This document shows, in pieces, positions 3,097 to 39,246 of a stretch of DNA of 64,000 nt (position 1 is the first letter of the stretch; every line of letters starts with the position of its first letter). The translations under genes and the position numbers were made by a program. The notes below the pieces were generated by a model. It was not told the origin of the DNA, did not search any database, and saw nothing but the letters and a program-made list of their open reading frames with translations. Source of the DNA: Podarcis tiliguerta (Eukaryota); the NCBI GenBank assembly GCA_965153285.1, contig OZ229116.1; one strand, given 5' to 3'.

Positions 3097-3099
<3 letters not shown>

Positions 3100-5914: not shown

Positions 5915-6007
5915 AGCTAGACCATCCATACTTAATATCCTGCAACATAATCCAAGCCACAATCAGAAAGCATTGGGGAAAACCCACGTGCTGATCAGAT
6001 CACAGAG

Positions 6008-7186: not shown

Positions 7187-7235
<49 letters not shown>

Positions 7236-11416: not shown

Positions 11417-11453
11417 ACTCTGGAGATCTGCCACCCACCGGTGTGCCCTAGAG

Positions 11454-11589
11454 CAGTGTTCCCCAACCTTGGGCCTCCAGCTGTTTTTGGACTACAATTC
11501 CCATCATCCTTGACCACTGGTCTTGCTAGCGAGGGATGATGGGAGTTGTAGTCCAAAAACAGCTGGAGGCCCAAGGTTGGGGAACACTG
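11454..11589. mobile_element. Palindromic hAT (Charlie-like) MITE
   Basis: Nearly fully palindromic 136 bp with cagtgttcccc ends. Perfect 8-bp TSD ccctagag. Confidence 0.93.
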
Positions 11590-12052
11590 CCCTAGAGGAC
11601 TTACATTGCAGTGTGAGCAACAATGGGAAGCAGCAGTTATTGTGAACTGCCCTGATATCTACAGATGAAGAGCAGTATACACATTTAATAAATAATAATA
11701 ATAATATTCTGAACTGAGTCAGTCAGCTGGGTCTTGCCACCATTTGATTTTCAAAACAACAATAAACAAACCTATGGTCACGTAAAGCATACTCAATAAA
11801 CACACAAGACATAACCGGCTGTGTTTTTAGATAAATAAGGTATACTATTCATGTATCAAATCATAAATTTCAACGGACGTAACTCATAAAGTTCAACAAA
11901 CAAACAAAGCAGAAGACCCAGTGGATCAGATCATTCTCTAGTCAGTTCATGCATAAGGTCCATCCGTGTAATAGTGTCTATTCCACCTGTCTGTTCATAA
12001 GGTCCAAACAATCCACATGAAAGGTTGTAGCAGTTCCACAGAATCCTTTCAC

Positions 12053-12126
12053 AGAGTCTAAGACAAGGATTTCCAGAATATTGGCCTTGTTTCGCCGTCC
12101 TGGGCTTCATCAGTAGTTAAAGCTCT
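12053..12126 (-). ncRNA. Type I hammerhead ribozyme motif
   Basis: Minus strand reads AGAG-CUUUAA-CUA CUGAUGA A GCC-CAGGAC-GGC GAAA CAAGG...CCUUG UC^U UAG-A-CUCU. Core CUGAUGA, GAAA and GUC are intact. Stem III is 6 bp, stem II 3 bp, and stem I has an internal loop. Confidence 0.8.
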
Positions 12127-12253
12127 AAGCAATACAAATAAATACAATATCGTGATCTCACACCATTATACAGCAAAAATAATATAAAACCATAAATAAC
12201 TGTACATACCATATGTGATATTACAGGACAGTGGATCTTATGGCATAGTAGTA

Positions 12254-12619
12254 CAGTGGTGCCCCGCAAGACGAATGCCTTGCAAGACGGAAAACCCGCT
12301 AGACGAAAGGGTTTTCCATTTTTCAATGCGCTTCACAGGACGAATTTCTCTATGGGCTTGCTTCGCAAGACGAAAATGTCTTGCGATTCTTGCGATTTTT
12401 TTCCGCTCCCCACCCCCTTTTTCTAAGGCACTAAACTGCTAATAGCCTTTTAGCAGCTAATCCGCTAATCCCTTAAGCCTTTAATAGCCGCTAATAGCCG
12501 CTAAACCGCTAATAGTGCTAATCCACTAATCCGCTAATAGGGTTGCTTCGCAAGACGAAAAAACCGCTAGACGAAGAGACTCACGGAACGGATTCTTTTC
12601 GTCTTGCGAGGCACCACTG
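12254..12619. mobile_element. Tigger/pogo-like MITE family B
   Basis: TIR cagtggtgcc(c/t)cgcaagacgaa. TA TSD. Homologous to 32837, 56941 and 61692. Confidence 0.93.
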
Positions 12620-12626
12620 TAGTAGT

Positions 12627-12979
12627 GGTAAAGGTAAAGGTAAAATGACCCCTGACCATTATGTCCAGTCGTGGCTGACTCTGGGGTTGCGGTGCTCATC
12701 TTGCTTTATTGGCCGAGGGAGCCGGCGTACAGCTTCTGGGTCATGTGGCCAGTCTGACTGAGTCGCTTCTGGTGAACCAGAGCAGCACACGGAAGCACCG
12801 TTTACCGTTCCACCGGAGCGGTACCTATTTATCTACTTGCACTTTGACGTGCTTTCTAGGGTGGCAGGAGCAGGGACCGAGCAACGGGAGCACACCCCGT
12901 TGTGGGGATTCGAACCGCCGACCTTCTGATCGGCAAGTCCTAGGCTCTGTGGTTTAACCCACAGCGCCACCTGCGTCCC
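12627..12979 (-). mobile_element. Sauria SINE (Squam1)
   Basis: tRNA-derived head with A box TGGCGCTGTGG and B box GGTTCGAATCC. BovB-like 3' end with (ACCTTT)n tail. TSD ~agtagtagtagtg. Confidence 0.95.
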
Positions 12980-13749
12980 TTCCAGTAGTAGTAGTAGTGA
13001 TTTGATTTTCCGCAATATGATGGGTGAGGGAGGGAACTGAAGGGGCAGCAGGACAGCCATCATCTCTTGGGCCATTCATACGTCCAGCAGCTGCTGAGGA
13101 ATGGCAACACCTGCTCCTCTTGCATGTTTACCTGGCTGGTGGGCATGTCAGCAAGAGCATGATGCCCACGTGTGACATCATCTGCAGACACCAGAGCTTA
13201 CAGCTCTCCTGAAGAGAAGATTCAAAGGAGTCACAGCCAGAACACTGAATCCTACAGAGATCCAGCAGGCAGCTTCTCTGCCCTGTTTAGTGGGTATGTT
13301 GGGCCAACGCAGGATCTTTTAATTACATAAGTAATTATCTTCTCGTGGCCCCACTGGCAGTTCTCTCTTGACATACTGATGTGACTCAGCATGCCCTTGG
13401 GGAATTAATACTCCAGCACATGGCAGCTTGGGAGAGCTGTGATTTCACTTTGGGGTGGTTAATATAGAAAACAATTAACTGCTTTTGCTTTCCAGCGACA
13501 GTAAACTGAATTCCCCCTGACAGCCAGCAGAAATGCCGTAGGCAGAATCAAGTTGATTATTTAAGGTTTAAATGCTTTCTTTGCAACAGTTTAACGTTGC
13601 ATACATTCTGTTAGATCTAAGCTTATAAAGGCAGACTACTGCTGTTTACAAAAGCAATTCTTAAAAAAAACAAAAACCAACCCACAAGTTTCCCTGTGCC
13701 AAAGCATGTAAAGTGCTGAGTCGCTACTACAAAGAATAGAAACAATGGG

Positions 13750-13800
13750 CTCTTCTTCTTCTTCTTCTTCTTCTTCTTCGTCTTCGTCTTCGTCTTCTTC
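13750..13800. repeat. (TCT)n/(TCG) microsatellite
   Basis: Direct read. Explains the poly-Ser in ORF 13745-14158. Confidence 0.95.
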
Positions 13801-14399
13801 CCTGAAGCAATTTAATCTTTTAAGAATGGTTTTCTCCCACTCTCTTCTCCAAATTTGCTATGAATTGAAATTCTCCAGGTGTTCTGTGAGCAATATAAAT
13901 ATTGAGAGAAGTTATTTCCTACCTGTAGTGCCGATGAAATTCTTTATTTTTAAACCAAACATGCTTGCTTTTGAAGAACGAGGCAGCCACTCTCTACTTC
14001 TTCAACAGGATATCAACATGAGCAAGGGAATGAAAACAGAGGTCAAAGCCGTTTCCAGAAAAGGGGGTCCATTTCTCCTGAAACATAAACATTTAATGCT
14101 GAAGGATGTCAAGAAGCTAATAAGAGCTGGTGTGGTCCAGCCAATAGAGTATGTATGAGATTTGGGGTAATTTTTGCCATGGACATTTAAGAGTCATCCC
14201 CCCCCCCGGAACGAATGACCGCTCTTCAAAGTCTCTCTCCTCCCCCCCCCCCCCGGTCAGCAATTTGGATTGTAAATGCAAGAACTTCCAGTACCATTTT
14301 AAGCAACAGTTGTGCCTATGCCCTTGGGGGACTATGTTCAAATCCCTTTTTTGGTGGTGCAAACTGCATTGCATTCGTCAGAAAGTATTTTACAATTCA

Positions 14400-19240: not shown

Positions 19241-22200
19241 GTATATATGGCTATTTACATTTTGTTGTTTGGTGACTGTTAAATGAATGATGTAAAATAT
19301 TTTGATGCTGTGAACCGCCTTGAGCATGGTTTACTTTGGGAAGGCGATGTACAAACAGATAACAGTGGTGGTGACAGATGTTTATTTAAAGTGGATGTTC
19401 CAATGCTATGGCGACCTGGAAATAAATTGTAAAGTAAAGCCATGTTTGCTGCCAGCACTAACAAAGACATGAGAAAAATAAAATTAAAAAAGGAATCAGA
19501 AATGAATGCTAAATAGTTGTGCGACTTACAGAACCATGTTTGGATTAGTCGGTAACTTCTTGCAAATATAATACCTGCTGCTTTTGTAAACCACTCTGGG
19601 GTTTCTTTTTACAATCGTGCATAGAATACACATTTTATGAGATGAAATGAATAAACACCCCAGCCTTTATTTCCCAGAGTGGTAAAGATGGTCATGGTTT
19701 TTGCCATTAAAAATCCTTAGAAGAGAAGGTAAAAAGTTCAGAACTGGGCATGTCTCCAACGTAGCACACACAGCTGAAAAGAAATTGACACTCCAGGGTG
19801 TTGAATGATGTCCGCTGACTTCTTCCTGCCACCCAGGTCAAACAGAACACCCAGACAGGAATTCCAGCAGGGCTTATCACAATCAGATCTGCTCCAGCTT
19901 AGGAGAGAGAATGTCCACCTTTGCAAGGCAGGGCTCTGCCAGTAGCCAGGATTAGCGCAGAAAGCCATTTGCTGGGAAAGGCAGTTCATTAGTGTTTACT
20001 AACAATCATCCATGATCCCTTTCAACCAGGGAAATGAGGGACAAAAGTGAAATTAGGTCACTCGGATAACAAGAGGGTCTTGCTATTGAAGTTAAATCAC
20101 ATTCTGGAGGGATTTTCTTCCTGTTATTGCTCGAAAAGAGTCGCTCAAGCCTGGTGACATCTAGCTGGCTGCTCCCAACATCAGCACTGGTTTAAAGAAG
20201 AGGCAATGACATTAAGAACTGGCAACCGTTAATCTTCCTGGAGGTTTTCTGGTCCCCTTGCCAGGTCATCTGTAACTGACAGTGACGGTAAAAGAATAAA
20301 TTATGAACAACCCACCATGCATTACATTGCAGGACACAACTGTGTTCTAAGGAAACAGGGGAGAGGAGGGGAAAGAACCCTGTAGGAAACAGGATGAAGG
20401 CATTATTATCTCTGCACAATGTCTTCTTCTGCACTTTGGACAGCTGAAGAGATGAAGCCAAATAACCTGCCCTCAGACGAAGCAGCCTGCTGCAACTCTT
20501 CACGAGTCCCTGCCCTGAGCTTTCTGTTATGGCTTGAAGAGTCTTGTTGGTGTAATGCTGCACTGATTTTTTTATTTTTATTTATTTAAAAGAAGATAGA
20601 ATGCAAAGTTGTGCTCTTTTAACTTGGCGAAATGTGAAAGCAGTTAACTTAGGCTGGGCCGTACAGACCCTATGTATCTCCACTGTGTAAGCATGGTAAA
20701 ATCGTAAGCTCTACTTATTTCCATGGATGAGTTCAGCACAAGCGAGGGATGTCAGAGAATTCTGGTGGGAATGGGAGCAGAAATTCCTGGTGCTCACTTA
20801 TCTGTTCCATGTCTGGACCAGAAATCAGTCCCAAAAAATACAATTGGTATTTGTTATTGTTTTCAGATGGTAAACAGTACAATTAATGAGTCCCCACCCC
20901 CACATGTGAATTATGTTTCCTTGGCATTGAAATGAATGGTGTGGAATAACAGCTGTAATTACATAATTAATTATGTAAAATTCCATCACCATGAATGATG
21001 CCGTTTTTGCCAGAAGCCAGACTGCTGTGGAACGGAAACAGGGCTGCAGGTGACAAATATGGGTTGGAATGGAAATTAATGCCTTCTTACATCCTGAGCA
21101 CATGATAAACTCTTTCCCTGAGTTTAAAGGCTGCCATCCTACACCCATTTATGTGGGAGTGGACTCCATTGACCTCAATGGAACTTACTTCTAAATTGAT
21201 GTGTAGGAGCTTTTAAGTTCCATTGATTAAAAACCAGTGGAGCAGCTTAGCATGTCTTCGTGTCCAAAGGCATCCTTTGCTGTTTGAAAATTTTGCTTAA
21301 ATACACTTCATGTGCTTTGCCAGCTCTGCTTCCATCACAGCAAAGCAATTACCAGTGCTGCATGAAAGCAGCAAGGAACCAGTCCTCTGCACCACCACCA
21401 TCCCAGCTTTTGCCAGTTTATTCCTTGTTCTTTTTGAGATCCTCGTACTGTGAAGTCAGACATGGCAATCTCATTATGCGTCCTAATTTGTGTTCCGTGT
21501 TTGGTGATGCAGAAGTGGCCGTCCTATTGATTGCTTTCATCTACCAAGTGGCCAAAACAAATGGAGGCAAGGGGACTGTTATTGCAACTGATGAGGATGG
21601 CAGCCCAAAAGAAGACCCAACTCTTACAAGGAAACCCCAAGTCTCGCTGCCACCCAGGAAGAGGGGGCCGGTGCAATGACTGCTCCTTCTCCTTAAAGGC
21701 AGTAGGTCAAGGGCCCATGTTGAGCCTGCCTTGGGCAGTGGGACCTTGGAAGCTTCTCAAGGATGCCAACTGCTGGACTTGACAGTTATTGCCCAGAAGA
21801 TTAGTCTAATTACTTGTCCTCTAAAAATTCATTGGTTTTCATTCTTCTCCAGAGAGAATGGAAATTGTAGTCCCCTCCATGCATTTATTTCCAGGAAGCC
21901 TCAAAGACCACATTGCAACAAGCCATTCCGAAGAAGTGTCTGTGGCTTTTGCTAACTCTTGATTATTCCACCATTCTTTTTTGGGATGTAAACTGGAGAA
22001 TTTGTGAGGAAGCCAGGCAATTGGAAGCATTAAGGGGATGGCATTGTGGACAGCTCTAATTATGCCTTTGCTCCCACAAATTGAATTCCATGCCAAAAAA
22101 AGAAAGCCAGTGCTTTTGCATATTTACTGAGATGGTGGTCTCCAGCACAAACCTAGCATTAGCCAATTTCAGAGTCTAGTAATTACTGTGTTTTTAAGAT

Positions 22201-22959
22201 TAGTATTGAATGAAATAAAATTAAGTATGATCCCTCAATATTAATTGTTCAGTAGTGCAATTTGGCATCCTTTAGGAACAGAAAAGCCAAAAAAGAATCA
22301 ATAGTTTTTAAAAATGCAATACAGTAATTAAGCTTCTGCATTTCAGCAAATATTTCCCATTTTGAAAGATGGAACTATTTCTGCATCCTTTTCTTTTTAA
22401 ACTACATTCATGGCGCCTTGTAAAGAGATGACGCATTCCTGATGCATTGATCTCCATCCTTTTGCAACTTGAATAACTGGTTTCTTTCAGGTACCTAACA
22501 TTGGAATGCTCACATCGAGAGCAGAGCTGCTAAGATGCTTCAGCGGATGCAGAACGCAGCTCTGATCTGCTAAACAAAATAGGACTATAAAAACACATGT
22601 GGTCTGCAACAAAATGTTGCAATGTGGACTGTTCCTGTTCAGGCTTCCACTTACAGGATGATCCTTTCCATTATAGCCAGCACACCTGCAGCCTGCTGGT
22701 ACCTCCTTCTTGGGCACAGATGACGCTGTTTTGGCTGCATGCGAATCCATACATGATTCCACACAGGAACGACCACTTGGAGGAGTGCAGAAAGAAGGAA
22801 TGCCACGGTGCACCTGCATCAACACAACTTAACACCTTCATCAGCCCCTAGCTGCAAAGGAACATGCCTCTCTACAGCCACAGCAGGAGCTGTAACTCTG
22901 CTATGGTTTGACTTCACCCCCAAAGGCGCACTCTTCCATTGTCTCCTGACGGATGCCAA

Positions 22960-22996
22960 TCAACCAACCAACCAACCAACCAACCAACCAACCAAC
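22960..22996. repeat. (AACC)n microsatellite
   Basis: Direct read. Confidence 0.95.
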
Positions 22997-25088
22997 GGAG
23001 AAACCACACTTGAAGAACTGACTTTGCTGTTTATATATGTGATGTGATGCGATAGCTGCAGTAGGGAACACTGAATGGGCACTGCGCTTTTAGGGAACAA
23101 CTCTTGGGCTCTGTACACAGTCCCATTTACTCTGCACCCAGTGCAAACTCCCTACATTGGTTTCGGAAGCATCTGATATTAACCATAATCCATATCTATC
23201 CTGTATCAATCCTGCCATTTCTTAAGAGATACTGAGTTATCTGCATCCCCCTGCCCCAAATCAGCTCTGAGCTGAGCTGAGAAAAAGAAGAACCCAGCTG
23301 CACTTTAAGTCAGTAATGCACAAACAGCTTTTGTGTAGGGAGTGCCTCTTACCTGTATGGCCCCATGGCTCCTCTGGAATCCAAGGCGGCCCCTTTGCTG
23401 AAGGAGGCGCTTTGATGCTTGTTAGTACATTAAATGAAGTTCTCTATGACCTGCAGATTTTCTCTGCACAGGCCAGTAGGTTCTGATACACAAAGTTGCG
23501 AACTTTCCATAAATGTTGTTAAGACAAACAGGAATAACCAAGACTAGTTTGTTAAGGGTGCTGGGAATTGTAGCTCTAGGGGGTAAACTACGGTTTCCAT
23601 TATTCTTTTGGGAAGCAATGCTTGTTAACATGCTATGAGTGTGCTTTAAGTGTATGGTTTGGATGTGACAGGATAGATACAGTGAGTTTCTGGAATTCAT
23701 GTGTAGAATATTTTTATAAAATAATGCTTTATTGTTGTTGTAAGCTGCCCACTAAAATTAAAATGTATTTTCAAATGTGCATCAAGTTATGAATTAATGG
23801 GATGCCCAAGAATAAGCAATGTAGGAAAGAAAATGCCTAATGGTAAAATGTCTATTTTAGAAATATTTTTTTGTAAAAGAGACAGAGAGAGACCCACAAA
23901 GCTTTCTTGTGACCACAAACTTGTCATAATTTATAGAAAACAAAGCTCTAAAATTTAATTTTAACAGATTCGGGTTCTGACTGTGCCACACAGAGCACCT
24001 GCCGAACAGGGGAAGGAAAATACATTTTAATGGTTTTAAAAGGAAGGAGTACATTCCATTTTAATACTGAAGTAACAGGAAGAGGAAGAAGCACAAAAAT
24101 AAAATTAATATAATATACCAATATATTTATTGGCAGTGGCAATAACTTGGTGTTACAAGATCATTTCGCAAAGAAAATAAAGTGTATTTTGTGGTTGAAC
24201 AGAAGTGGTTTCTGTTGCATAGCATGCCTAAACACAGAAGCTAAGAGCAAGCAAAATTGCCCTTTTTAGAAGAATCCCTTAGCTCATTGAAAATCCTCAG
24301 CCCTTTTAGCACTCTTACCTCAGGAATGCAGATTACAAGCAGCAAACGGAAAGTAATCCACAAATAGCTTTGGAATTATGTTCAAAAAATTGTCCTTTCA
24401 AATTTTTGGTGTTTTGTTTGTGTTTTAAGCCTCAGAGTCCGGGGAGTGTGCGTTCGGATACAAAATGGCTTAAGAAACACTTTGCAATTGGAACTAAGCA
24501 GTATGAAGGGGGGGAGGCTGCACCCACTAATTTTACAACCATCCATCGGCTTCTTCTAGAATGAAAGCTGGTCACAAAAACGGAGTTCTCTCTGACAGGT
24601 CTGGCCACCTAAGATTAAAAGAAAAGGATGGCCTAATTCCTATAGCAGCGAATGGGTCAGTGCAGGTAGGTCTCCATTGGTCCCTGTCTTCCTAACACTG
24701 CAGGCCACTGCCGATTACTGAGAGCAGTAGGGAACCTGGCATGTGGCAGTGCATGGCTACCCAGCCAATCCCCCCCCCCATGCAGCTGCAACAGAGCTCC
24801 ACCAACCACTACTGACTGATTCAGATGCAACAGCAAAACCACTTCCGAACTCGAGAGGAGGTGGAGTTGCGGGCTTCACGCCCTCTCCACATGCACGGGG
24901 GCTGGCTCTCAGCCTCCACGCTATTGAGGGGATCCCTGGCTGCATCATCCCCTGGCCAGCCAATCAGCTGGCCTAGGGGGGGCGCGGCTTGCGTGATATC
25001 ACCCTGGCGCGGCCAGGGATCTCCCTCTTTTGCCGCCTCAGCTCATTGGGTTTCCCACCCTCCCACCCTTTAGGTTTTCCTTTTGACC

Positions 25089-25191
25089 TTGCTATGCACC
25101 TCGGTTGGTCGCCGTTAAGGGGCCTGGTAGGAATTTTTTCCACTTGGCGAATTGGCACCAGCCACTTGGTTTTTTGCCTACCTCATAGCAA
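25089..25191 (+). ncRNA. ENE-like U-rich internal loop (putative poly(A) triple-helix stability element)
   Basis: GGUAGG-AA-U6-CCA...UGG-U6-G-CCUACC (25126-25182), closed by outer helix UUGCUAUG/CAUAGCAA. Confidence 0.65.
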
Positions 25192-25490
25192 ATCGTCACA
25201 ACTTCCTCGGCATTGGCGGTTAGGCATTGGTAGGGGTATTGTCACCTCCCCCGAATATTGAAGGGTAGTCCGGTAAAGGATTCCGGGGGGCGTGGCCCTG
25301 TCCGAAGCCTATGAAGGTGAGGGCCTAAGGCACGCCCCCGAGCAGTGACCCCGGGGGAGTTCCTAGTTCATGTGGATCAACAGGACTCCCCCTACTGGTC
25401 GTTAACCCTTCCCGGTCTTCAAGCAATTGGGCTGAAGCCGGATAGTCGGTTAGGACCAATGCCTAAGCCAATACCGTTCATTCCTGTAAC

Positions 25491-25550
25491 AATAAAGTTA
25501 TGTCCTTTTTTTGCCCATTAACCTATATATTTGTGTCATGTGTCTTTATT
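25491..25550 (+). terminator. Polyadenylation signal with downstream GU-rich element
   Basis: AATAAA followed ~35 nt later by ttgtgtcatgtgtctttatt. Confidence 0.6.
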
Positions 25551-28500
25551 TCCACAGGGGGGAGGCAAGAACTCACCACGCAAACCATAGTTTTCTGTTA
25601 TGTGTAGAATTCCCATTCATGGGTTGGCTTGGCCCAGTAGATGGGAGTCACTTGGTGGAAAGCTAGAAGGATGGAGCTAAGCTTTGATCTGCTGAGGAAA
25701 CTTAATAATATTTATGTGGTCATCGCTTGGTTCATTAGCAAAGGGATGTGTATTGGCATCTTGTGGAAGACAATTGTTCTCTGGAGGAGATTTAGGTCAT
25801 GTGCAACAATACTCCTTGCATGCCTAGAGATCCTGTGAGGCCTGAGGCCTTTAAGTAGTTATGTCTGTTTCCTATGTATTTATTCCATACTATAATAGTT
25901 TCGTATGTCCAGCTATGCTGAGACAGCACTAGGTGGGGATGGTAACCTTCTAGATAAAGTTCTGTGAGGAGTTCCGTGGTGACTCGCATTGCAGGGAGTT
26001 TCCACTAGTCTTAGACTGCTTATCACACATTAAATTGAACTTCATTTTGGTGGGAATGCATAAATAACCCAAACACCAGATGTGACATAAATACTAGGTG
26101 TGGCTTATGTAGCCCCAAAACTATGTAAGTCCCAAGAACAGGGGTCCATTCATTGTCAGTTAAGAGGTTCTCCAGCAACCAGAAAAGACGTAAGAGAATT
26201 GCAATGCTTTCTAGCTTTCTTTGAGCTATTTAATGAAATATTTAGCATTCACTCCATTTTGTGTTCATTGTGTTCCAAATCCAAAAAGAACATTTGCCCC
26301 TGGGCAAAACAGGTATTTTACATGTGTTTAATGGTTTTTAAGATGTTTTTAATAGTATTGTGTTGTTGTTTTGTTTTAGTAGAACAAAATCATCATAGAA
26401 AACAAGTATGAAATATTTGAAGTTGCATTTGCATGTTGCCGTACACACCAGAGAGGGAAAAGGGTATCTTCTCCCAGTGCACATTTCCTGATTTGTTCCT
26501 TAACTGGTTCCTATCTGACTGTATCCCTGGCTCAGTAAAGTCCTTGTTCCAAGCACAGGGGTTTATCTGACCTCAATGCCTGATTAGTAAAATACTTTTC
26601 CCAGACACAGGAGAACTAAGATTCCAACCCAGGGCACTCCTAAGTAACCAGTGACCTTCACTATAGATGTTACTCCTATAGATAGCAATCGCTTTGATAC
26701 CACAAACAGCTAAATCCCTTTATTACTTTTCTCTTCTTCCATAGAATTTGCAGGATAATTCTAAAATTACATGCTTTAAGGAGCAGAGGAGAAAATACAG
26801 CTGCTGATGCTACTGACTTTTTGAAGAACAGAATCAAAATTAGCAAGGTGTATCTGAATATGGATTCAGTTTAAGAAATCTGTTTTTATAGGCATACAAG
26901 TAAACATTTAAAATTTGATTTTATGCCTTTTTCTACTCTACTCCTCCTTTTGAAGGATAAATTAATGCAATGATACAATAGGAAGGTTTCCTTTTTGGCC
27001 AATGTGAGATTTTTCTACTTAAGGGTATTTAGGACTTGGGAAGAGCAACATAAACCCAGTGTTCTAGTTCACCACACAATGGAAAATATATGCTAGGAAA
27101 ATTAAGGCTGTAGTTCCAATGTCATGATCCACTATGGTTTCCACTGCATATTTACTTGTTTTTCACACCATGGTTCTTCCACATAGGCTTCTGAAGGGGT
27201 TCTAGAAGCCTTGATATTTCAGAAGATGGATGGCTTGTGGTCTCGTTGATGTGGCTCCAAAGAGGTTGCAGTCATTTGTTGCTTTTCCTGAAAACTTAAG
27301 AACCGCAAGCAGCTGGATCATTCTGTATTTGTATCTGGGAAGTACTAAACCACATCCCTGATTTTTATCCAATCCACTTTTACAGTAATTGAAACCCACA
27401 GTAAAAATGTGGTGTTCATTAGAGTCTTGACTGAACCTGCAGTTTTCCACTAATTAAGTGAAACGTGTTCCTTCGCTCTCTCTGTCTCTTAAGCAGCTCT
27501 AGTGTAGAAAAGCTCCAACAACCTTCTTGTCTTCAAAAATGTTTCTTAAAACCAGATACGGACACAAAAACAATGTCATTTGTGGCCTCCATGAGCAGCA
27601 GGAGCCATTTCTGATGCAACCATTATAAGTTTCCTACAGTCAAATCACAAACTATCTGTGTTAGGGCAGGTTCACTGAATGCGATGCAACTCACATCATT
27701 CCTGACGATTGGCCATGCTGGCTGTAGTTGGAGTCCATCCCCATCTGGAAAGCACCACTTCTAAAGGCTATGTTAGGACGTAGGTATAAGCCAAATGACA
27801 TGGAAGCTGCACCAGCCACATAGAAGGCAATGGCAGGACACATAATCTTTTCTCCCCAACTCCTTCTCCTTGGCAGAGGAAACACCGTGTCTCTGTAGGC
27901 AAAGTTGGTGTGTATGTCTCAATACAGCCACAGGAAGATAAGAAGCTGCCATATACTAGGTCAGATTGTTTCACCTATCTAGTCAAGTATTTTCTTCTGG
28001 CAGTGGCCTTTGAGGATCTCTGGCAGTGGCCTTTTGCATTGCTTAGTGCACTATCTAACCCCTTCCTAAGGGAATACACCAGGCATTGACTCTGAGACCT
28101 TCTGTATGCAATGCATGTGCTCAGCCACCAGAGCTGGCTCTGCCATGAGCCCAACTGAGGTGAATCGCTTCAGTGGTAGATTTCAGAGGGATAGTGGATC
28201 GGGGTCCGAGAGCTCACCTGGTTCCACCCTTCCTGACTGGCTACCTGCTTGGTGTTTAGTTGTGTTTTATATTATGTTGGAAGCTGCTCAGAGTGGCTGA
28301 GGCAACCCAGTCAGATGGGTGGGGTATAAACAAACTTTATTATTATTATTATTATTATTATCATCATCATCATTATTTTCTGTGATAAGAAAAGTGATGG
28401 GAAAACACACTGAATAGGGAGGGATAAAACCCACTTGGATGCAGCATCAAACCTCCCTGCAAACAAACCAGAATGGATGCTCATTAAATGGTCAATGTTG

Positions 28501-28775
28501 TCTAAACTTTCCTTATTGTAGCTTATTGATTTATTTTATGCATATTATGGTGAGCATTTTAGGTTGTTTTTACTCTTGCTTTTATATTTGTTCTTAATGT
28601 TAGTTTTCGTAAGCTGTTCTGAGTTTACCTTTTGATGGGCAGGGGGCATGCAAACAAAACAGGATAAATGATTAATAAACAACTTGTCCAGAAGTCCCCA
28701 GTGGGTTGATAATATGGAGCTAGATGGACCAACTATCAACAGACAGCAACTACCCAGAGTTCCAGTCAGCTAGTA

Positions 28776-29181
28776 TAGCGATGGGCAACTCTGTCACTCT
28801 TAGTTTCTCATTTTTCCAATCTAAAGTTCAGATCTCCACATTTACACTTCGGTCTGCAAGTCCACATGAAAATTCACCAGCATTTTCGTGCAAACTTCTA
28901 ATATACACATTTGTGTGCAATTTTGCCTAATGGGCACATTTCTGCAAAACAATTTCCCCCTAACACAATTTTGTCTGCTTTTTTGCAGATGTGTGAATTC
29001 TTATGTGCACATTACTCTGGTATGCGCATCCTTGCACACAATATTTGCCTGGAAGAGTGCACTGCAAAATTCAGAGAAGTGCAGATTGCATAGGATGGCT
29101 GAGTTTTGCTTCTCGTATTGTGTTGGAAAGTGTAGCTTCACCTTTAACTGCAAATTGAATGGAATTTCTCCCCCACTTCTA
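28776..29181. mobile_element. hAT-like TAGGGATGGG family, copy 4
   Basis: tagcgatggg...cccacttcta ends. Internal homology to the other copies. Confidence 0.75.
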
Positions 29182-30723
29182 GTAGTGTTGGTACTGAACT
29201 CCACAAACTTGTCTAGAGACCCATTTTAGAATGCCCTGGCTCTGAGATGGGTAAGATGTAAGAACAGCTCGGGCCTTCTCTGAGGCTTCTTTATCCCTTT
29301 CTATGCCTGGTGACATCAGTGGCCATACAACAGGGCTTTGTGTTAACTGTGCCCCCCTCCAAGAGTGGATCTGAGCCCTCTCCTTCTTGGGTGATTCTTA
29401 GTGTGAGTTGGGAGGCTTATTTAGCACCAAAGCCTTCAGTGTTACCCTAACCATTGGATAGTCCCTCTTGTCTACAGGGATGAGGGATTTCACCTATGAT
29501 TTTCAGGATTTATGTGGACTCTGCAACCCCTTCCAAGGAAATCAGTGCAATGAAGGATGGACTCTAACCCTATACTAGTTCAGTGTGCTATATTGTTGTT
29601 CTTAGTCTGCGACTGGGTTCTGTTTTATGTTTTTCAAAGAAGCATATACATCATCAGGTAATACATTCCATGCCATTCATTTCCCCGCTCAAACGCGGAG
29701 CCTAAAAGCAACCAGAGAGAGAAACACCTTTCAATCCATCATCAGACTTTACTTAAACAAGGCCAAGCACAAGCCTTCACTTGGCATTTCGATGGCACCA
29801 AAACTCTGAGAAAAGTTATATACCTGAGATTTCATATGCAGAATTATGACCTCACTTTTTAAAAAGAATCGTTGGCAATATTTCTGGAACGAATTCAGAA
29901 AACGCCATTTTCTGTAGGAAACACATTTCCAGAAAACTGTTTCCTACATGGAGAAGCACTGAATAAGTGGAATGACAAATGTTCTCCTTCGGAGGAAAAT
30001 AAGGGTGGTGGTTGGGAAAACCTTTTCATCTGAAGTTGTTCATATTGGCAGCACCATGGATTTGTGAAGGTTCCAAATACTCATTCCTGCATCATTTGAG
30101 TTCTTCATTAAAGCCTGATTGGAGTAAAGCCCTCACCCAACAAGCTGATCTGATTCAGCAGTGTTTCAACACGATGTGTCTCACTCAGTGAAGTGAATGC
30201 AGAGCTGTTTTAGAGTCAAGACAACTGGCTTTCTTTCTACCAAACAAGAAGGGCTGGGTTAGCAATATCCATGCTTTGCATCATTTGGAGCAGGTTCACA
30301 GAAGTTGGTGAGACTATTCTTGAGCCAATGATTTGAGGCAAGGATCACCAACTTCCTTGGGCCTGTGGGCGTATTTGCAAAGTAGAGCACCAAGGGCATC
30401 ACACATGTGCCATAATATCACATGCCCAGCAACCATGCGTGTGCGCACATGCAGGCACAATGAAAAGCCTTGGCAGGTGCCAAGGATTGCCTAACGCTGC
30501 CACTGGCTCTTCCTGAAATCACCCAAACACTCTGTCATCCTACTCTGGAACAAAACCACCTGCCTCAAATATAAAGTATTGTTTCTCCTTAGCCTGGTCC
30601 TCCTGTTTCTTTACTTCACAGTCAGGGGCCCAATCAACAAAGCAATTCCTCTTGCAAAAGCTCCCATTCATTTCAGTTGAGCTTCAGTGGAGTTCATGAA
30701 TTCCTCCCAACACACATGCTCAC

Positions 30724-30989
30724 GAAGAAGAAGAAGAAGAAGAAGAAGAAGAGTTTGGATTTGATATCCCGCCTTTCACTCCCTTTAAGGAGTCTAAAAG
30801 CGGCTAACATTCTCCTTTCCCTTCCTCCCCCACAACAAACACTCTGTGAGGTGAGTGGGGCTGAGAGACTTCAAAGAAGTGTGACTGGCCCAAGGTCACC
30901 CAGCAGCTGCATGTGGAGGAGTGGAGACGCGAACCCGGTTCCCCAGATTACAAGACTACCGCTCTCAACCACTACACCACACTGGCTCT
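30724..30989 (-). mobile_element. Squam3-type tRNA/CORE SINE with (CTT)n tail
   Basis: Head agagccagtgtggtgtagtggtt...ggttcgcgtctcc. CORE-like gggtgaccttgggccagtcac. L2-like 3' end. Closely matches 59258-59507. Confidence 0.88.
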
Positions 30990-32836
30990 TAGCGATACTT
31001 CCATCAACACAGTTTTTTAGGAATACACACACAAGCAATTTCCATGTCAAGAATTAAAGCAATGAAAAGACTTATGCCCATATTTACTTACTTATGAATC
31101 AGACATGGGTAAGTCAAGAGACCTGGAAGCACAGAAGCAGGACCATGTTTGACTTGAGAATCACGCCCATGTGTGATTTCCATCACAGTACTTGTGAATA
31201 ACCTTCCACAAGTGGGGGGGAGTGACAACAATAATGGTCTGCCTTGTAACTTATTTATTTCAACAACAACAACCTGTTAGGGGTGGGTTTTTCCTTGATT
31301 ACGTGCTCTGGTCCCCATAAAGGCAGAAATCAGAGAGATTTTTTAATTCAGAGACTCAATAACCTTTTAGATAATAAGGCTGTTAACAGGCTTCTGTAGC
31401 CAAAGGGGCATGAGCTCTGCCTTGGCTAGTAGCCTCTTGGGTCTGTAGATAAAAAGTGGTGTGGAAGGTTACAGAAAGGAACTGAATCAAAAGAGCAGTA
31501 CCTTTCAGCTCCCAAAAACTTTCATATCATCTCCCATTGACCCTCGAAAGCTCTTAACTCCCACTTCCTACTAGAACTTTCCCCTTTCAAGACAATTTAT
31601 GCACTCTGACATAAACTGGTTAATGGGGCCATTCTACCACAAATGTGGAAACAAGTTGATCTTCATTGACCTAATATCTTGTATTAAAGCTTAGTAAGTT
31701 TTCTGTCAGGTCAAAGGATACGTCCATGAAACTCCACGGGTCCTCAACCACAAAATGGCCCTGAGGTAACATTCAGTATTTGATGGATTCTGCTGTGTGT
31801 ACAGTTCATCCACCACAGAACCATTCACTGTACCCGACCGTAATGTTTCTACTCAACAAGCTAATTAAAATTTCCTCTATTATATACAACATTAATGATG
31901 AGGTAATAGTTTATCACATAAATGTCTGACGTTTTTGGCATGAGGGAGCCTGCTCTTTTTGGAGGTTGAAATGACAGAGGTTACATAAATGCCAGTTATT
32001 CATTTTACATCTGTAGAAGATCAACATTAAAATGAGAAACCAATCCGCCAAGTCCTGAGAACTCCGAACAAGAGTAGCTAGCAATCAAGCCCCCATGAAT
32101 ATAAATGAGATGTTTTATGATGACTAAAGCTTACATAAGAAGTTGTTAGTTGAACTGGTCTACTCTTGGGTTTTTTGTTTCTCTGATTATGGGCCACATT
32201 CAATTATTAGTTGTACTGACTTCAAAAAAAGGCTGGTGCCCTTCAACTTAAGTGCTGCCTTCGGTTATGAATTCAATCATGGGAGCGAGTTGCTGAGGCC
32301 ATATTTTATTACCAGTATTTGTGCATCCATGCTGGCTTCATAAAGCTTTACAGGGACAATTCAATGTGTTTATGTTGACCTTTAAATCCAATGTCAAAGG
32401 GTCAGTCTACTCCAATATAATCTTCATAATCATCATAATCTTGCAGCTATCCAGAAGGTAGCTCTATCAATGATAGAGCATCTTATTTGCATTTAGAACA
32501 GCCTGGTCCAACGTTTGGCCTAAGGGCCACTTGTGGCCCTCTAGGCTTCTTCTTTTTTTGGCAGCCTGGAGAAATATTTGACACCCACCACCCCAGCCCT
32601 TACACAGCCTTCCCAAAACTTGGTATGAAAGGCACTGGGCTTTGGGAAGGAGACATGAGGGCTCTGCTCTGACAGGGTCCTAGACTCTTCCTGACTCTTT
32701 CTCAAAGCCTAGTTATCACTTTTCCAGCTTTGGGAAGAAGGTTGGTGGTTTCTAGAACCCTTGTGCCTCCTTCCCAAACACTGCACCTCACTTAGCCAGC
32801 TTTGGGAAGGCAGTGTGAAGACTCCATATTGAAGTA

Positions 32837-33203
32837 CAGTGGTGCCTCGCAAGACGAAAAGAATCCGTTCCGCGGGTCTTTTCGTCTTGCGGTTTTTTCG
32901 TCTTGCGAAGCAAGCCCATTGACGGAGTAGCGCTATTAGCGCTATTGACATTTTAAGGGCTAAAAACAGCTTTTTAACGCTTGGGAGATTAGCGGTTTTG
33001 CTGCTAAAATGCTTTTAGCACCTTAGCGATTCAAAATAAGGGGTTTTGGAGCGGAAAAAAAATTCAAAATTTTTCGTCATTTTTCGTCTTGCGAAGCAAG
33101 CCCATAGGGAAATTCGTCTTGCGAAGCGCCTCTGCAGACGGAAAACCCTTTCGTCTTGCGGGTTTTCCGTCTTGCGAGGCATTCGTCTTGCGGGGCACCA
33201 CTG
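32837..33203. mobile_element. Tigger/pogo-like MITE family B (divergent subfamily)
   Basis: TIR cagtggtgcc(t/c)cgcaagacgaa. TA TSD. Confidence 0.92.
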
Positions 33204-34884
33204 TACATTGATTTAGAAGATCTCAGGTTCAATCCCCAGGTAGGGTTGGGACAGAGAGACACTCACACCATCCGAAACCCTGGCAAACCACTGCCAATTG
33301 GCATTGGTAGTCCTGAGCTGGATGAACCAATGGCCTAACTCTGTGTAAGGCAGCTTCCTATCTGAGAACACCCACTTCCAGTTATGGCCACCTACATTTA
33401 TAACAAAATTATCAGCTTACAGTTATACAGACAATACAAATGCACATAGATGGGTCTTGTCTACAGCCAACCCACAAGTCAAGGGCACCTTTTCTATGGA
33501 GATTTGTGAAACGCCTATGCTTGAGCTTCATTAATAAACATGGTGTGGTTTTATTTGAACTAGGCCTTGATGGCGGGATGAATTATTGCAAATAAATAAA
33601 CATGCAGCAGAGTCCTCTGCATATTTCCTCAGAAACTGTCCAAAAGTAACAATTGGTTAATGTTTTTATTCAGTGCTTTTTTCTGGGAGGGGGGATGCAT
33701 GGCTACGCATACCCCTAAACATTTTTTTTAGAAAAAAAGCACTGATTTTATTAAGACCATGTGACATTTTAGATAGTCCCAATAAAGGTATTGCTGTTAC
33801 TTTTGTTTTTCTCAAGGGCTCATCATGTCTACTTACCTTAACTATATATTTTTTTAATCCACTAAATTCATTTGGCCTTATTCCTATGCAATTGTGCATT
33901 GAATTGCAACCAATTCATTTTAACAATAATAATAAATCTGTATTTGTTACAACTTTATGTTTTCTTCCAGTGCAGTCTATACCTGGCCATGTAGAATTAC
34001 ATGCTATCACGTTCAATGCCCTTTACACTCCAGTAAGTGCATTTCAGAGTGCAGCCTAATGCAATGCCTTTGCATCCTCTACTTCAGTATCGTGTCCTGT
34101 TATTCATATCCAAAGAGCTGCTGCTGACAGTTCATTCTGAACACTTTTCAAAAACAGCCAAACAATAACAGCACAGGTCTAATCCTTCATTGCTTCTGAT
34201 ATTAAGCCAACCCTGGCGATGCCATCTCAGTTTTGGTCCTATTAACACTGAGTGAATAGGAGAGTTTGCTATGGAGACGGGTTAAAAATGTAACCATAAA
34301 TAGAAGAGCCAATCTTTCAATAATATCAGTTTAAGAAAACAAGAGGTGACTGACTGTTGCACTGTTGTAATGAAATTACCCATGTATGGCAGTTTCGGTG
34401 AGGTTTTGTTTGTTTTTCCATGGGATCTGAGGGCATCATGCACACAGACTTTACCCGAGGAATGTATCTGAATGAATGATTTCATTTGTTCCTTCTTAAA
34501 AATGGATAAAGTCATTGCCTTCTGCTTAGTGTACCAAACAGCTTAAAAGCAAAGTGACGGTTGTTTTCCTATTAACACTAAATGGTCATTAACCCAAAGA
34601 TCAAACGGAGGTGAGTCAAGTAGCCCCTCGTTCCTCAGAGACTCTCTCCCGATGCTTATCCCAAAAGGATTAGAGACCGGCCCTAATGCCTGGCCAGAGA
34701 GCAGTGGAGCTGAAGCGAGAGGATGGAGCCACTGCTTCATTCAGAGCTCGCCAAGGCCAGGGCAGAATGTGGGAGACAGGGGGTTTTTGACCCTTCGCTT
34801 TTGCTGCACCAGCTCCAGGATGGCACAGCAAAGAGGCCCAGAGTGAGCTCCTCTCCTGCTACTGCAACAGTTTATGTGATTACG

Positions 34885-35580
34885 GAAGGCGAGGGGGATT
34901 CAGTTTAGTTTGCATTTAAAGGCAAGCCTACCTAAGCAGTTTCCGAAGCAGTCATGTGAACCAAAGCACAGCCATCCTTCGGAATTCACATTTCTCCGAG
35001 TTTTGTAATGCGGTTCTCCGGCAACCTAAAGTGTACCAGTTTGTTATCTTTAACTTTTGATAGTTTTCTATTAATATTACTTTTATGTATGTGTCAAACT
35101 CTGAAGATTTATATTTGGAATAAAAGAAGATACATACAGGGAGAAGATGGACAGAAGAAGAAGGGATTTGTGTCGGAGATAGGTTAGAGTGGTTTTCCTC
35201 AGGATGAGAGGCTGAGAAAGGTGGAGGCTATCTCAGGTGAGAGCTGGGGAAACTCATATCTCAGTATGTGAATTGAGGATTAAGATAAAAGGCTGATAGG
35301 GGGCTATATATGTATAATCTCTCCTCTTTCTCTTTCTCTTTCTCTCTCTCCTTTTTTATTTTATTTTTCCTCTTTACTCTTTGGATTGTCTGTTCATATT
35401 AGATCTGTTTGGTTTGGTTTTTTAGTGTATTATATGTTGAAAATGTTTAATAAAACTGAAGGGGGGAAGGAAAAAATAGCTAGCTAGCTAGCTAGCTAGC
35501 TAACTAACTAACTAACTAACATGTATCAAAACACATATACTTGGGTAAAGTGTGTTCATAAATGCATCTATTAGTGGGAC
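34885..35580. mobile_element. Partial hAT-like TAGGGATGGG copy interrupted by a LINE (L1-like) 3' UTR at ~35039-35515
   Basis: The hAT sequence resumes after the insert. The insert ends with aataaa, an A-rich run and (TAGC)n(TAAC)n. Degenerate TSD acctaaagtgtacca / actaacatgtatca. Confidence 0.6.
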
Positions 35581-35816
35581 ATTTGCAAGCACAGGTAGTT
35601 TAACAGGTAATGTCTATAAACCATGCCATCTATTATGGCAGCATACACCAGCCTCCCTGGAATGAAGCATCAGTCAGCATTTCCATTACAATGACTTATT
35701 CCGAAAGCTTAAAATTAGACTGTAAAAAATATCTGCTCCAACATGATCTTGCCATCTTGTGAATACTGGCGTATCACCTAGCTCTTTGCAATCACAAAAA
35801 CTACAACAAAAATAAT

Positions 35817-35902
35817 CTGAAGAAGTGTGCATGCACACGAAAGCTTGTACCCAGAACAAACTTAGTTGGTCTCTAAGGTGAAAGTGGACAATTTTTTTAT
35901 TT
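35817..35902 (+). mobile_element. 86-bp Penelope pLTR 3' end with minimal hammerhead core
   Basis: CTGAAGA A GTGTG CATG CACAC GAAA GCTT. Perfect 13-bp TSD caacaaaaataat (35804-35816, 35903-35915). Homologous to the ends of the 9437-10193 element. Confidence 0.9.
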
Positions 35903-36593
35903 CAACAAAAATAATGTTCACAATCAAATTTTGTGGAAAAGTGAAACTGTCCAATCTTCCAGATTAAAACATTTCATATGTGAATAAACTTGAGAATTCC
36001 CTCCCCTACCACACACAATATTCCTGCCCACTATTGAGAGCGTTGCTTCTGTGCAGTACGTATGTCCCTGGTAGTTGACCTTGCAAAACAATGATAGCAT
36101 TGAACTGATGACAAAAATTATTTATATAGCAGTGGATGAGGAGTGAGGTTTTGATTACATTGAGGTCAGTGGCAGAGAGCCAACCACCAGGATGGCTTTT
36201 CAGACTTCAGCCACATGCACAGCCTCATGTGAGACAGTCACTGTCTCCTGTGTTTGGGATTCTCATAACCACAGAGACAAACTAAACATGCCATTAATTG
36301 TGTGGATGCAATTAACATACACTGACAAGAGAATCCTGCACTTGGAAACAAGCCTCACTGTGTTCAATGAGACTTACTCACTTGTAAGTATAACCTAAGT
36401 CTGAAATCCTATACCCACTTACCTGAAAGTAAGTCCCATTGAACTAAATGATGATATTTTTTTAAGTAGACATATTGTCTTGTGGCTACACTCATTCGTG
36501 AAAAAGTCTATGGGAGTAAACCCAGAGGAAAAATCTGTACCCACTGCCTTGCAGGATAAATTGCAGCAGAAGGCTAAGGAGTAAACCATACAC

Positions 36594-36726
36594 CAGGCAT
36601 CCCCAAACTCGGCCCTCCAGATGTTTTGGAACAACTCCCATCATCCCTAGCTAACAGGACCAGTGGTCAGGGATGATGGAAATTGTAGTCCCAAAACATC
36701 TGGAGGGCAGAGTTTGGGGATGCCTG
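36594..36726. mobile_element. Palindromic hAT MITE
   Basis: caggcatccccaaactc TIR. 8-bp TSD ccatacac / ccctacac. Older relatives at ~4255, 44680, 48160, 53598, 54990 and 57795. Confidence 0.9.
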
Positions 36727-37985
36727 CCCTACACAAATCCAGGGTCCCTTATATATAGTTTTGTACATTTCTCATTTCTGCCTATTTCTAGGCATAGGAT
36801 AATCATGAAATTCACCAGTTAAAACTTCCCCAGCTACCAGTGATTAAAAGCTCCAGATAACAAGGCAGAGGGTACTTTAGTTTTATCATAATCAAATTTC
36901 AAGAGGGGAACAGTACAACCACAATGTAGTTTTTTTAAAAAAATCCTATTCTTCTTAGTCAATGAACCATGTAATTTTGGAATACTGGATATCCTTTTAA
37001 ATAAATCACATTTGGCAAGCCCATTCCTGCAACTTCAGTGTTTTGCAAGAACAAGAGTCCAAGCTCAATAATCATGCTACTACTGAAGGACCTAGATTTG
37101 GTGCAACTGATACATGAATCACATATGGAGATGGAATGAACCATCAGATAAGACCCATAGCAGTTGTTGTCTTCTTGTTTCAAAGAACAACCTCGGTAAG
37201 GATGGGGCAAGGCATCCATAGCACCTTGGACAGCACCATGCAGAGTTCAGGCTGGAGACTCCATAAGCGCAGGGTGCAAATGTTGCTTCAGCAACAGTCT
37301 AAGCCTTAAATAGGAAGTTCAACTCTATCTCAGCTGCTAGTTGCACCTTTGGTAAGATAAGCCTCTTCATGGGTTCCAACATGCTTTAGCAATTGTTGGC
37401 TTTTCCAGAGCAGGAGAGACTGTGGAGTCACTAAGGCTTCTGAACTAGAGTTCTCAGAGTCAGAGGAGGGCAACACAACATCTTCAGGATGCAGAGACAC
37501 AGGCACATTGGGCTCCTGTTGTGCAATAGCTTGAGGGCAATTCTTTCTTCTACTTCTCCTGACAGGGACTGGTCAGATGTGGAAGAGTAGTGGAGAACAC
37601 CTGGCCAGGAATCCTCGAGGCAAAGTGTAGGAGAGGAAAGTTTGGACCCAGGTTTGTGGTGGTGGGAAACAAGACACACCCCAGGAAAAGAGAAGAACTG
37701 GGAAATATTGAAGGATGGGGAACAGGAGCAAGCTGCTTGATGCACCAGTCCCTTGGCAGTCACCCTAGGCAAAGGGAGGGATCTGACAAATAGAAAACAA
37801 ACTAGAGGTGGGAGGGGCACTCTGGGCACCACATCCTGGATCTCTGTGTTTGTTTTTATGCTAACAAAGAAGCTATTAGCTGAAGTGAGCTGTGTGCCTC
37901 ATTTCTCTCTGCTCTTTGCCAAGTGTGCTTGTTGTCCGCTCCCCCTCCTGAAGAAACGAGTCTTGAGTCCAAATGGCAGCTGTTT

Positions 37986-37989
<4 letters not shown>

Positions 37990-38024
<35 letters not shown>

Positions 38025-38408
38025 TTATTATTTGTACCCCGCCCATCTGGCTGGGCCACTCTGGGCGGCTTCCATAGAAACCAAAAATACACTAAAATGT
38101 CACACATTAAAAACTTCCCTGAACAGGGCTGCCTTAAGATGTCTTCTGAATGTCAGGTAGTTGTTTATCGCTTTGACATCTGATGGGAGGGCATTCCACA
38201 GGGCGGGCGCCACTACCGAGAAGGCCCTCTGCCTGGTTCCCTGTAGCTTTGCTTCTCGCAATGAGGGAACCGCCAGAAGGCCCTCGGTGCTGGACCTCAG
38301 CGTCCGGGCAGAACGATGGGGGTGGAGACGCTCCTTCAGGTATACTGGGCCGAGGCCGTTTAGGGCTTTAAAGGTCAACACCAGCACTTTGAATTGTGCT
38401 CGGAAACG
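37990..38408 (-). mobile_element. L2 LINE 3' fragment, relatively young
   Basis: LVLTFKALNGLGPVYLKERL..RTLRSS..RAFSVVAPALWNALP..FRRHLKAALFREVF* is the L2 ORF2 end. (TTA)n tail. Confidence 0.95.
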
Positions 38409-38853
38409 TTAAGCACTTGCTCTTGGACTTCTTTTGCAGTTGCTACCCAGTTAGTGTTCATTTTTTTTCTGGGGGAAAAAGCTGTCCTGCTCAACCTGAA
38501 GAGTGGTTCTGATAGGTGTCAGGCTCCCTGTACTAGTGGTCTGCTGGAATGTGTAGGTTGCTTTATTTTTTGTTTGTCTTCAACTTTTTGTGTTTGTGGA
38601 GACTGCCAAAGCCGTCTTCTCTGTTTTCTGCCTGTTCTTACGTGTTTCTGTGTGAATCAATGTGGATCTTTTTTGCCAGCTGCTCTGGTCCTGTGTTGGT
38701 TTGCTCAGAAAATAGACTGAGTGGGGACAGGAAATAGTAGCATACTCCTCGACTCTGAACATTTCCTGCCTTGGATGCTAGGTGATAATATCAGCCCATG
38801 TGATGGCCTGACATTCATGGTAAACATGTAGCCAGACCCTGACCTAGAATGTA

Positions 38854-39209
38854 AGGTAAAGGTACCCCTGCCCGTACGTGCCAGTCTTGCCAGACTCTAG
38901 GGTTGTGCGCTCATCTCACTCTATAGGCCGGGATCCAGCGCTGTCCGCAGACACTTCCGGGTCACGTGGCCAGCGTGACAAGCTGCATCTGGCGAGCCAG
39001 TGCAGCACACGGAACGCTGTTTACCTTCCCGCTGGTAAGTGGTCCCTATTTATCTACTTGCACCCGGGGGTGCTTTCGAACTGCTAGGTTGGCAGGCGCT
39101 GGGACCGAACGACAGGAGCGCACCCCGCCGCGGGGATTCGAACCGCCGACCATGCGATCAGCAAGTCCTAGGCGCTGAGGTTTTACCCACAGCGCCACCC
39201 ACATCCCAC
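38854..39209 (-). mobile_element. Sauria SINE (distinct subfamily)
   Basis: A/B boxes and ACCTTT tail. Perfect 13-bp TSD gacctagaatgta (38841-38853, 39210-39222). Confidence 0.95.
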
Positions 39210-39246
39210 GACCTAGAATGTAGACACTGTCAAACAGAGCCTTTCA

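Follow-up and report, generated by a model that had tools for sequence, protein, structure and literature searches.

Does a lizard retroelement carry an element for nuclear expression (ENE), the RNA stem-loop that clamps a poly(A) tail? The question is raised by positions 25089-25191 of a 64,000-nucleotide (nt) stretch of the Podarcis tiliguerta genome (contig OZ229116.1 of assembly GCA_965153285.1; the whole stretch is referred to as the window), where a first-pass annotation had described an ENE-like motif. ENEs are stem-loops with a U-rich internal loop beside G-C pairs that take A-minor contacts (PMC7583470; PMC13541005). More than 200 have been predicted, in long noncoding RNAs (lncRNAs) of double-stranded DNA viruses, dicistrovirus genomes, MALAT1, MEN-beta, transposable elements (TEs) of plants, fungi and slime moulds, and stickleback retroviruses (PMC7583470; PMC13541005). 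We found that the motif is present and exceeds chance. On the letters and the predicted folds it is plausible, with a little less than an even chance, that the segment is a working or formerly working PAN-type ENE that would bind the poly(A) tail of a long terminal repeat (LTR)-like lizard retroelement.

Reading the window bore out every letter and coordinate that the annotation had given for the motif. The lower stem, GGTAGG against CCTACC, contains six Watson-Crick pairs, and the outer helix, TTGCTATG with CATAGCAA, is complementary at 8/8 positions (coordinates of arms and tracts in Table 1). Two tracts of six U face each other on one strand between complementary arms. The upper stem CCA/TGG (25140-42/25167-69) closes them, its G-C pairs C25140-G25169 and C25141-G25168 adjoining the U tracts, and a 2x2 CU/CU mismatch parts it from a second stem, TGGC/GCCA (25145-48/25161-64), that carries an apical loop of 12 nt. 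On the lower side, AA (25132-33) faces a single G (25176) between the U loop and the lower stem. All 21 of the 21 pairs proposed for the ENE-like structure are Watson-Crick. The AATAAA that the annotation had placed downstream lies on the same strand at 25491-96, 300 nt past 25191, and is followed by a T/GT-rich stretch.

Chance expectation was gauged with a descriptor consisting of two T runs of at least 5, 10-70 nt apart, with a 3-bp closure above holding at least two G-C pairs and, 0-2 nt below the U tracts, a stem of 5 bp or more, three or more of them G-C. Of the 74 T-run pairs that the two strands of the window offer, the ENE-like site alone matched, as compared to a mean of 0.015 matches per window in dinucleotide shuffles (n = 200). 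The descriptor was written after the motif had been seen and ∼350 chance matches are expected per 1.5-Gb genome, so a single instance is not decisive; the UGGC/GCCA stem and the outer helix are not part of the descriptor. Perhaps the motif has no RNA function and is a by-product of the TE's inverted and direct repeats (CCACTTGG present twice, a loop inversion, palindromic arms), kept by descent from few sources. One of the ∼350 chance matches, if it fell in a source element, would be copied thousands of times. However, the UGGC/GCCA stem and the perfect 8-bp outer helix make chance much less likely, and the T runs are on the same strand, so a palindrome does not explain them. We consider an origin as such a by-product unlikely.

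The motif resides in one copy of a high-copy repeat. We compared the region 24400-25800 with Logan contigs of three related lizard species and of one run guessed to be RNA (X20), counting matches to the repeat at ≥80% identity. Between ∼3,700 and 4,900 contigs per DNA run match the repeat, while the flanks are single copy, with depths of ∼10-17 up to ∼24835 and from ∼25575. Summed depth is ∼2,000-4,000 over 24835-25057, rises steeply at 25071-25134, peaks at ∼90,000-100,000 over the ENE-like segment, and is 20,000-40,000 to ∼25480 and 6,000-14,000 to ∼25560. It is ∼1,200 at 25568 and single copy beyond. Summed depth is not copy number and its peak can be inflated, so all we take from it is that copies number in the thousands and that the motif is one of their best-shared parts. 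GC content is 0.51-0.63 in the repeat, and the observed/expected CpG ratio is 0.54-0.60 as compared to 0.19-0.27 in the flanks. Loose contig ends at 25204 and 25231, beside the motif, reflect private changes of this copy. In other copies, joints with replaced letters connect the 3' part to the 5' part of low depth, so both belong to one element with a variable 5' region. The X20 run provides contigs only and covers the unique flank at low depth, and is thus uninformative on transcription, strand and ends. The annotation's placement of the motif in a lizard retroelement agrees with this high-copy repeat, seen by contig depth in three species.

The repeat has the layout of a U3-R-U5 element: a variable 5' part, a conserved part with the poly(A) signal, and a short conserved tail. 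This layout fits an LTR and is no proof of one. Approximately 45-60 nt of family sequence lie beyond the expected cleavage site, and the right end of the repeat is probably at 25556 (...TTTCCACA), with CA at 25555-56. We infer an LTR-like retroelement that numbers thousands of copies in a lacertid (probably a Podarcis) and in close relatives; the LTR-like class is an assignment of this kind because TG..CA ends with a target-site duplication and a partner copy were both missing from the window. For the partner copy, a repeat search, blastn at word size 7, and two 17-mers with up to 3 mismatches found no second copy within the 64 kb. The copy in the window is an old immobile insertion, and any function belongs to the source elements of the family.

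Two other classes of element were considered. An L1-type retrocopy was rejected: no A tail follows the poly(A) signal, past which family sequence runs on for 45-60 nt. RNA polymerase III is terminated by T6 runs, and a short interspersed element (SINE) transcribed by it in the + orientation is unlikely given two such runs. A degenerate core pattern had 0 matches in the metagenome and viral contig collections. A search for homologous proteins with the 90-amino-acid open reading frame (ORF) over the motif was empty, a search of protein representatives gave one weak match, to the repetitive 406-amino-acid protein P0121 (E 1e-4), which was taken as chance, and no ORF of any length was found near the repeat. 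The annotation had also proposed a promoter upstream, which we could not confirm: the repeat has CCAAT at 24960, and TATA was not found in it. A scan for sigma-70 promoters and terminators was empty as well, these being bacterial signals irrelevant to a eukaryote. The annotation's mention of a GGAAGG...CCTTCC variant in long interspersed elements (LINEs) of reptiles or amphibians was not confirmed.

Among the best-supported differences between this copy and the family (202 further ones lie outside this set, and minority variants inside the motif may exist), two departures from the family majority fall within 25089-25191, at 25097 (majority G) and 25149 (majority A). The latter, in the apical loop, is the sole one of this set within 25105-25198. 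Within the same set, the tracts vary between five and six T and in no other way: T5 makes up ∼33-48% of family sequence for the 5' tract, with one letter missing at 25134, and ∼8-13% for the 3' tract. Stems and U tracts alike therefore represent the family majority and are no accident of this copy. The annotation had made its case depend on U tracts and flanking stems being conserved among copies, and contig comparison identifies both as family-majority sequence.

Several variants bear on strand and fold. By our reasoning, a G at 25097, the majority letter, would stand opposite U25183 and extend the outer helix by a G.U pair. With G in place of A at 25185, another variant, the outer helix survives on the + strand solely through U.G. 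The G25097 and G25185 variants would give G.U on the + strand versus a C.A mismatch on the − strand, favoring the + strand, which speaks against a by-product of repeats. In one subfamily, seen through loose contig ends at 25156 and 25171, the apical GGC-ACCA-GCC (25154-25163) is replaced by its exact reverse complement GGC-TGGT-GCC, and both CCACTTGG repeats read CCATTTGG (CCAC to CCAT). This inverted-loop subfamily keeps CCA/UGG, UGGC/GCCA, U5 and CCUACC and gains the pair A49-U60. The inversion would break ACCAGCC, the 3' arm of a competing helix (25103-09/25157-63), provided that the subfamily's unseen 5' arm is unchanged. These variants are hints at the + strand and at the ENE form.

The poly(A) signal and the motif belong to the same R-like region. 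AATAAA is kept in another copy of the family (X20, at 25486), and we read it as family-conserved. In the primary sequence the start of the poly(A) tail is ∼320 nt from the ENE domain. A predicted long-range helix, with segments at 25208-10, 25212-17 and 25220-31 and inverted repeats complementary at 12/12 and 8/8 positions in this copy, closes a multi-helix domain of ∼225 nt (25208-25476). In the predicted fold the tail start is thus separated from the ENE domain by ∼55 nt of loose or hairpin chain plus one helix. AAUAAA itself is predicted to lie in the loop of a small hairpin, which the majority letters G25500 and G25503 would, by our reasoning, lengthen through G.U and C-G pairs on the + strand only. 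The + strand of 25085-25515 folds at −173.5 kcal/mol (z −4.4). With regard to the conserved AATAAA, the motif's placement and orientation fit a functional reading, as does the long-range helix, and these points count against a mere by-product.

Two further observations concern the poly(A) signal. The segment 25483-25497, which includes it, is 80% complementary to 25544-25558 in the U5-like end of the repeat. An RNA with the U5-like end could mask AAUAAA, and an RNA cut at ∼25515 could not; such masking in the lizard repeat would resemble the choice between 5' and 3' poly(A) sites in retroviruses. In addition, a 16-nt direct repeat with 81% identity and a spacing of 481 nt (ATCTCCCTCTTTTGCC, 25019-25034; ATGTCCTTTTTTTGCC, 25500-25515) is so placed that one copy immediately precedes the abundant part of the LTR-like repeat and its partner follows closely on the poly(A) signal.

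The R-like region could also be under selection as a structure of the RNA or of a replication intermediate that does another job. Candidates for this job are packaging or dimerisation, control of 5' versus 3' polyadenylation, nuclear export, and binding of a protein that recognises U-rich RNA, with the U tracts acting as protein-binding or spacer loops. The unusual structure of 25085-25515, with several perfect helices, agrees with this explanation and makes the ENE-like hairpin one module of many. The poly(A) signal in a hairpin loop, complementary to the U5-like end, likewise recalls retroviral poly(A) regulation. However, facing pure tracts of five to six U with a G-C closure are exactly the ENE signature, and we know of no retroelement packaging, export or poly(A)-control element with two such tracts, facing and G-C closed. 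The loss of the competing main helix in the inverted-loop subfamily, on the proviso given above, with the ENE stems kept, is also at odds with another job. We regard this explanation as somewhat unlikely.

For the ENE itself, we propose the following mechanism. The segment 25089-25191 would be the family-conserved, structured 5' portion of the R-like region, and the + strand RNA would fold as a single-domain PAN-type ENE with facing U5-6 tracts and a C-G closure above. A 6-bp G-C-rich stem would lie below the U loop, and the 8-bp outer helix would lock the whole domain. Polyadenylation would occur ∼15-25 nt after the AAUAAA at 25491. The 21-bp long-range helix (25208-31/25455-76) would fold away 225 nt and bring the tail within ∼55 nt of the ENE, where it would lie between the U tracts as U.A-U triples. 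These triples would shift the RNA from a slightly more stable alternative fold to the clamp form, and the clamp would slow deadenylation, leading to more retroelement RNA. We hold it a tentative but serious possibility, based on predicted folding, that a lacertid LTR-type family of thousands of copies has a working single-domain ENE in its R-like region to which a long-range helix delivers the tail.

Left unconstrained, the 103-nt domain folds at −37.5 kcal/mol (z −2.75). In this fold the outer helix is kept, GGAA pairs with UUCC, the side region pairs with the apical region, and each U tract is in a hairpin loop, an arrangement equally good for a protein and so in line with another job. When the twelve U are barred from pairing, as engagement with adenosines would bar them, the ENE structure has the lowest energy (−33.8 kcal/mol). 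The alternative fold, too, leaves 4-5 U per tract unpaired (probability ≥0.99), so the tail could nucleate there. The energetics are compatible with a tail-induced switch, but make a weaker case than in ENEs for which the clamp itself is predicted.

Several results weigh against a working ENE, and some of them favor one of the other explanations. With the rest of the RNA left free, the ENE structure has −33.7 kcal/mol, the alternative is better by 3.8 kcal/mol, and the ENE pairs have a probability of ∼0.002 in the ensemble of naked RNA; that the ENE form is not the predicted fold is what a by-product of repeats would lead us to expect. The − strand of 25085-25515 folds equally well or better (−174 kcal/mol, z −5.4), as DNA-level inverted repeats would, and since it is at least as structured, much of the structure signal is strand-neutral inverted repetition. 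The first lower G-C pair (G25131-C25177) is set off from the U tracts by the AA/G spacer (AA 5', G 3'), unlike in the ENE of the Arabidopsis element Evade, where G-C pairs directly adjoin the U tracts. Rfam gave no ENE-type match at E values up to 10 in either 4.5 kb or 141 nt, the ENE models of Rfam 15 having not been checked. Both the spacer and the missing Rfam match favor another job for the structure. Contig overlap at branch points and private changes of this copy may have inflated the peak in depth over the motif. Copies of a TE family resemble one another through common descent, so their conservation does not in itself show selection. Finally, no boundary pair showed TG..CA termini with a 4-6-bp target-site duplication, the 6-bp matches being within chance.

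Lizards offer one more candidate. In anole, dozens of MALAT1-like triple-helix/mascRNA loci have been reported (Zhang et al. 2017, in the citation given by PMC10869381), and the motif could be a locus of this kind, in which an ENE is accompanied by an A-rich tract and a tRNA-like element cut by RNase P. The motif shares with MALAT1 and MEN-beta a U-rich internal loop in a stem-loop, whose triple helix guards the 3' end there, and such loci are reported to have multiplied in lizards. However, there is no run of at least five A in 24835-25590, no tRNA-like structure, and no mascRNA, menRNA or MALAT1 match in Rfam, and the U tracts are pure, lacking the C/G interruption of MALAT1. The A-run, tRNA-like and Rfam results refute a MALAT1-like locus here and leave it highly improbable. 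The annotation's likeness to the MALAT1 ENE accordingly fails in its defining parts, the encoded A-rich tract and the tRNA-like element, and the motif is not a member of this group.

The nearest architectural kin of the lizard motif is, on its letters, the single-domain, tail-binding PAN type. Like the PAN ENE of KSHV (Kaposi's sarcoma-associated herpesvirus), the lizard motif is one stem-loop with ∼5-6 U per strand and a G-C closure, located upstream of a conventional AAUAAA signal, whose tail would be added after transcription and not encoded. In contrast to the KSHV element, the lizard motif has the AA/G spacer below the loop, and it lies ∼320 nt, rather than ∼100 nt, from the tail, a distance shortened by the long-range helix. 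The two have no sequence or covariance-model similarity, and the KSHV element belongs to a herpesvirus lncRNA whereas the lizard motif is in a genomic repeat and known from sequence alone. The annotation had called the architecture PAN-type; this stands for the overall single-domain layout, the sense orientation and the position upstream of the poly(A) signal, and does not stand for the lower G-C pairs, which are not adjacent to the U tracts. A double ENE was rejected, as only two T runs of at least 5 are found upstream of the poly(A) signal in the repeat and they form one loop. Binding of Sm proteins requires RAU4-6GR, with a G after the U run; we rejected an Sm-site reading of AAUUUUUUCC, in which this G is missing. 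Look-alikes of mir-640 and of small nucleolar RNAs nearby score far below Rfam thresholds.

Among TEs, ENEs are known mainly from plants and fungi, where they are found in and beside LTRs (PMC7583470, PMC13541005). In Evade, the U tracts and the immediately adjacent G-C pairs are needed for triplex formation, and the ENE protects the RNA from CCR4a (PMC12501189). An Arabidopsis ENE was recently shown to block deadenylation, leading to higher retrotransposon mobility. The lizard motif resembles the plant and fungal elements, such as the double-domain ENE (dENE) of rice TWIFB1 and the ENE of Arabidopsis Evade/Copia93, in being TE-borne, on the sense strand, near the putative 3' end and in or beside a presumed LTR, and in the proposed protection of TE RNA from deadenylation. 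Most plant elements are double-domain with two U-rich loops, whereas the lizard motif has one pair of U tracts and a reptile host. The adenosine triad or 3'-end pocket of dENEs is not evident in it. The ENEs of stickleback retroviruses, as listed in PMC7583470 after Tycowski et al. 2016, are also vertebrate, LTR-type and predicted to clamp the poly(A) tail. They are in another host class, the lizard family consists of thousands of short LTR-like copies, and the two are likened by description only. The annotation's claim of a vertebrate TE-borne ENE thus agrees with the high-copy lizard repeat, but would not be unprecedented, as stickleback retroviruses are among the ENE carriers listed in PMC7583470. 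The literature searched, which did not include the primary surveys (Tycowski 2012, 2016; Zhang 2017), yielded no report of an ENE in a reptile TE.

Table 1. Features of the LTR-like repeat and of the ENE-like motif within it (positions in the window; helices and hairpins are predicted)
Feature	Position	Strand	Basis or remark
One copy of high-copy GC-rich LTR-like repeat, ∼720-750 bp	24835..∼25560	+	Contig depth, GC/CpG
Variable 5' part, U3-like, with CCAAT at 24960	24835..25075	+	Depth 10-50x below 3' part
Outer helix 5' arm UUGCUAUG	25089..25096	+	Kept in every predicted fold; pair probability 0.93 in 431-nt RNA
Weak side hairpins inside domain	25098..25124	+	Constrained fold; unconstrained fold pairs the stretch with apical region
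Alternative helices	25103-09/25157-63 and 25111-14/25153-56	+	Unconstrained fold
Lower stem 5' arm GGUAGG, then spacer AA 25132-33	25126..25131	+	Pairs with 25177-82
5' U tract, U6	25134..25139	+	U34-37 unpaired, probability 1.0
Upper stem-loop, holds direct repeat CCACTTGG twice	25140..25169	+	Letters, constrained fold, repeat search
3' U tract, U6, then single G 25176	25170..25175	+	U71-75 unpaired, probability ≥0.99
Lower stem 3' arm CCUACC	25177..25182	+	Same in three variant 3' halves of family
Outer helix 3' arm CAUAGCAA	25184..25191	+	Letters and constrained fold
Long-range helix 5' arm	25208..25231	+	3+6+12 Watson-Crick pairs with 25455-25476
Long-range helix 3' arm	25455..25476	+	Predicted folds and inverted-repeat search
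Small hairpin, AAUAAA (25491-96) in loop	25486..25501	+	Predicted fold
T7 and GT-rich stretch, downstream-element look-alike, U5-like end	25506..25556	+	After poly(A) signal; depth ∼9,000-14,000

Elsewhere in the window, the only long ORF (50910-51491, − strand, 193 amino acids) encodes a BovB/RTE-type LINE reverse transcriptase in its C-terminal part. Pfam gave no match, but homologues number in the thousands, and among those with names the best belong to Podarcis muralis, P. lilfordi and Zootoca vivipara, so that the window comes from a lacertid lizard. SINE-like repeats opening with ACAGTGGTGCC(T/C)CGCAAGACGAA occur in both orientations at 12250-12980, 32830-33210, 56930-57300 and 61690-62660 and are unrelated to the ENE-like motif.

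Should the segment prove not to be an ENE, the LTR-like repeat of the lizard would still have in it a well-defined structured module. If it is one, it would be a first for reptile TEs and, after the stickleback retroviruses, a second for those of vertebrates, and its location in R would place it at both ends of the genomic RNA. Validation would mean that the same RNA-stability trick is used in vertebrate TEs beyond one fish retrovirus. It would also provide thousands of diverged copies from which the clamp's sequence rules could be learned, among them the tolerance for a spacer beside the A-minor stem, and would suggest that long-range folding can replace closeness to the tail.

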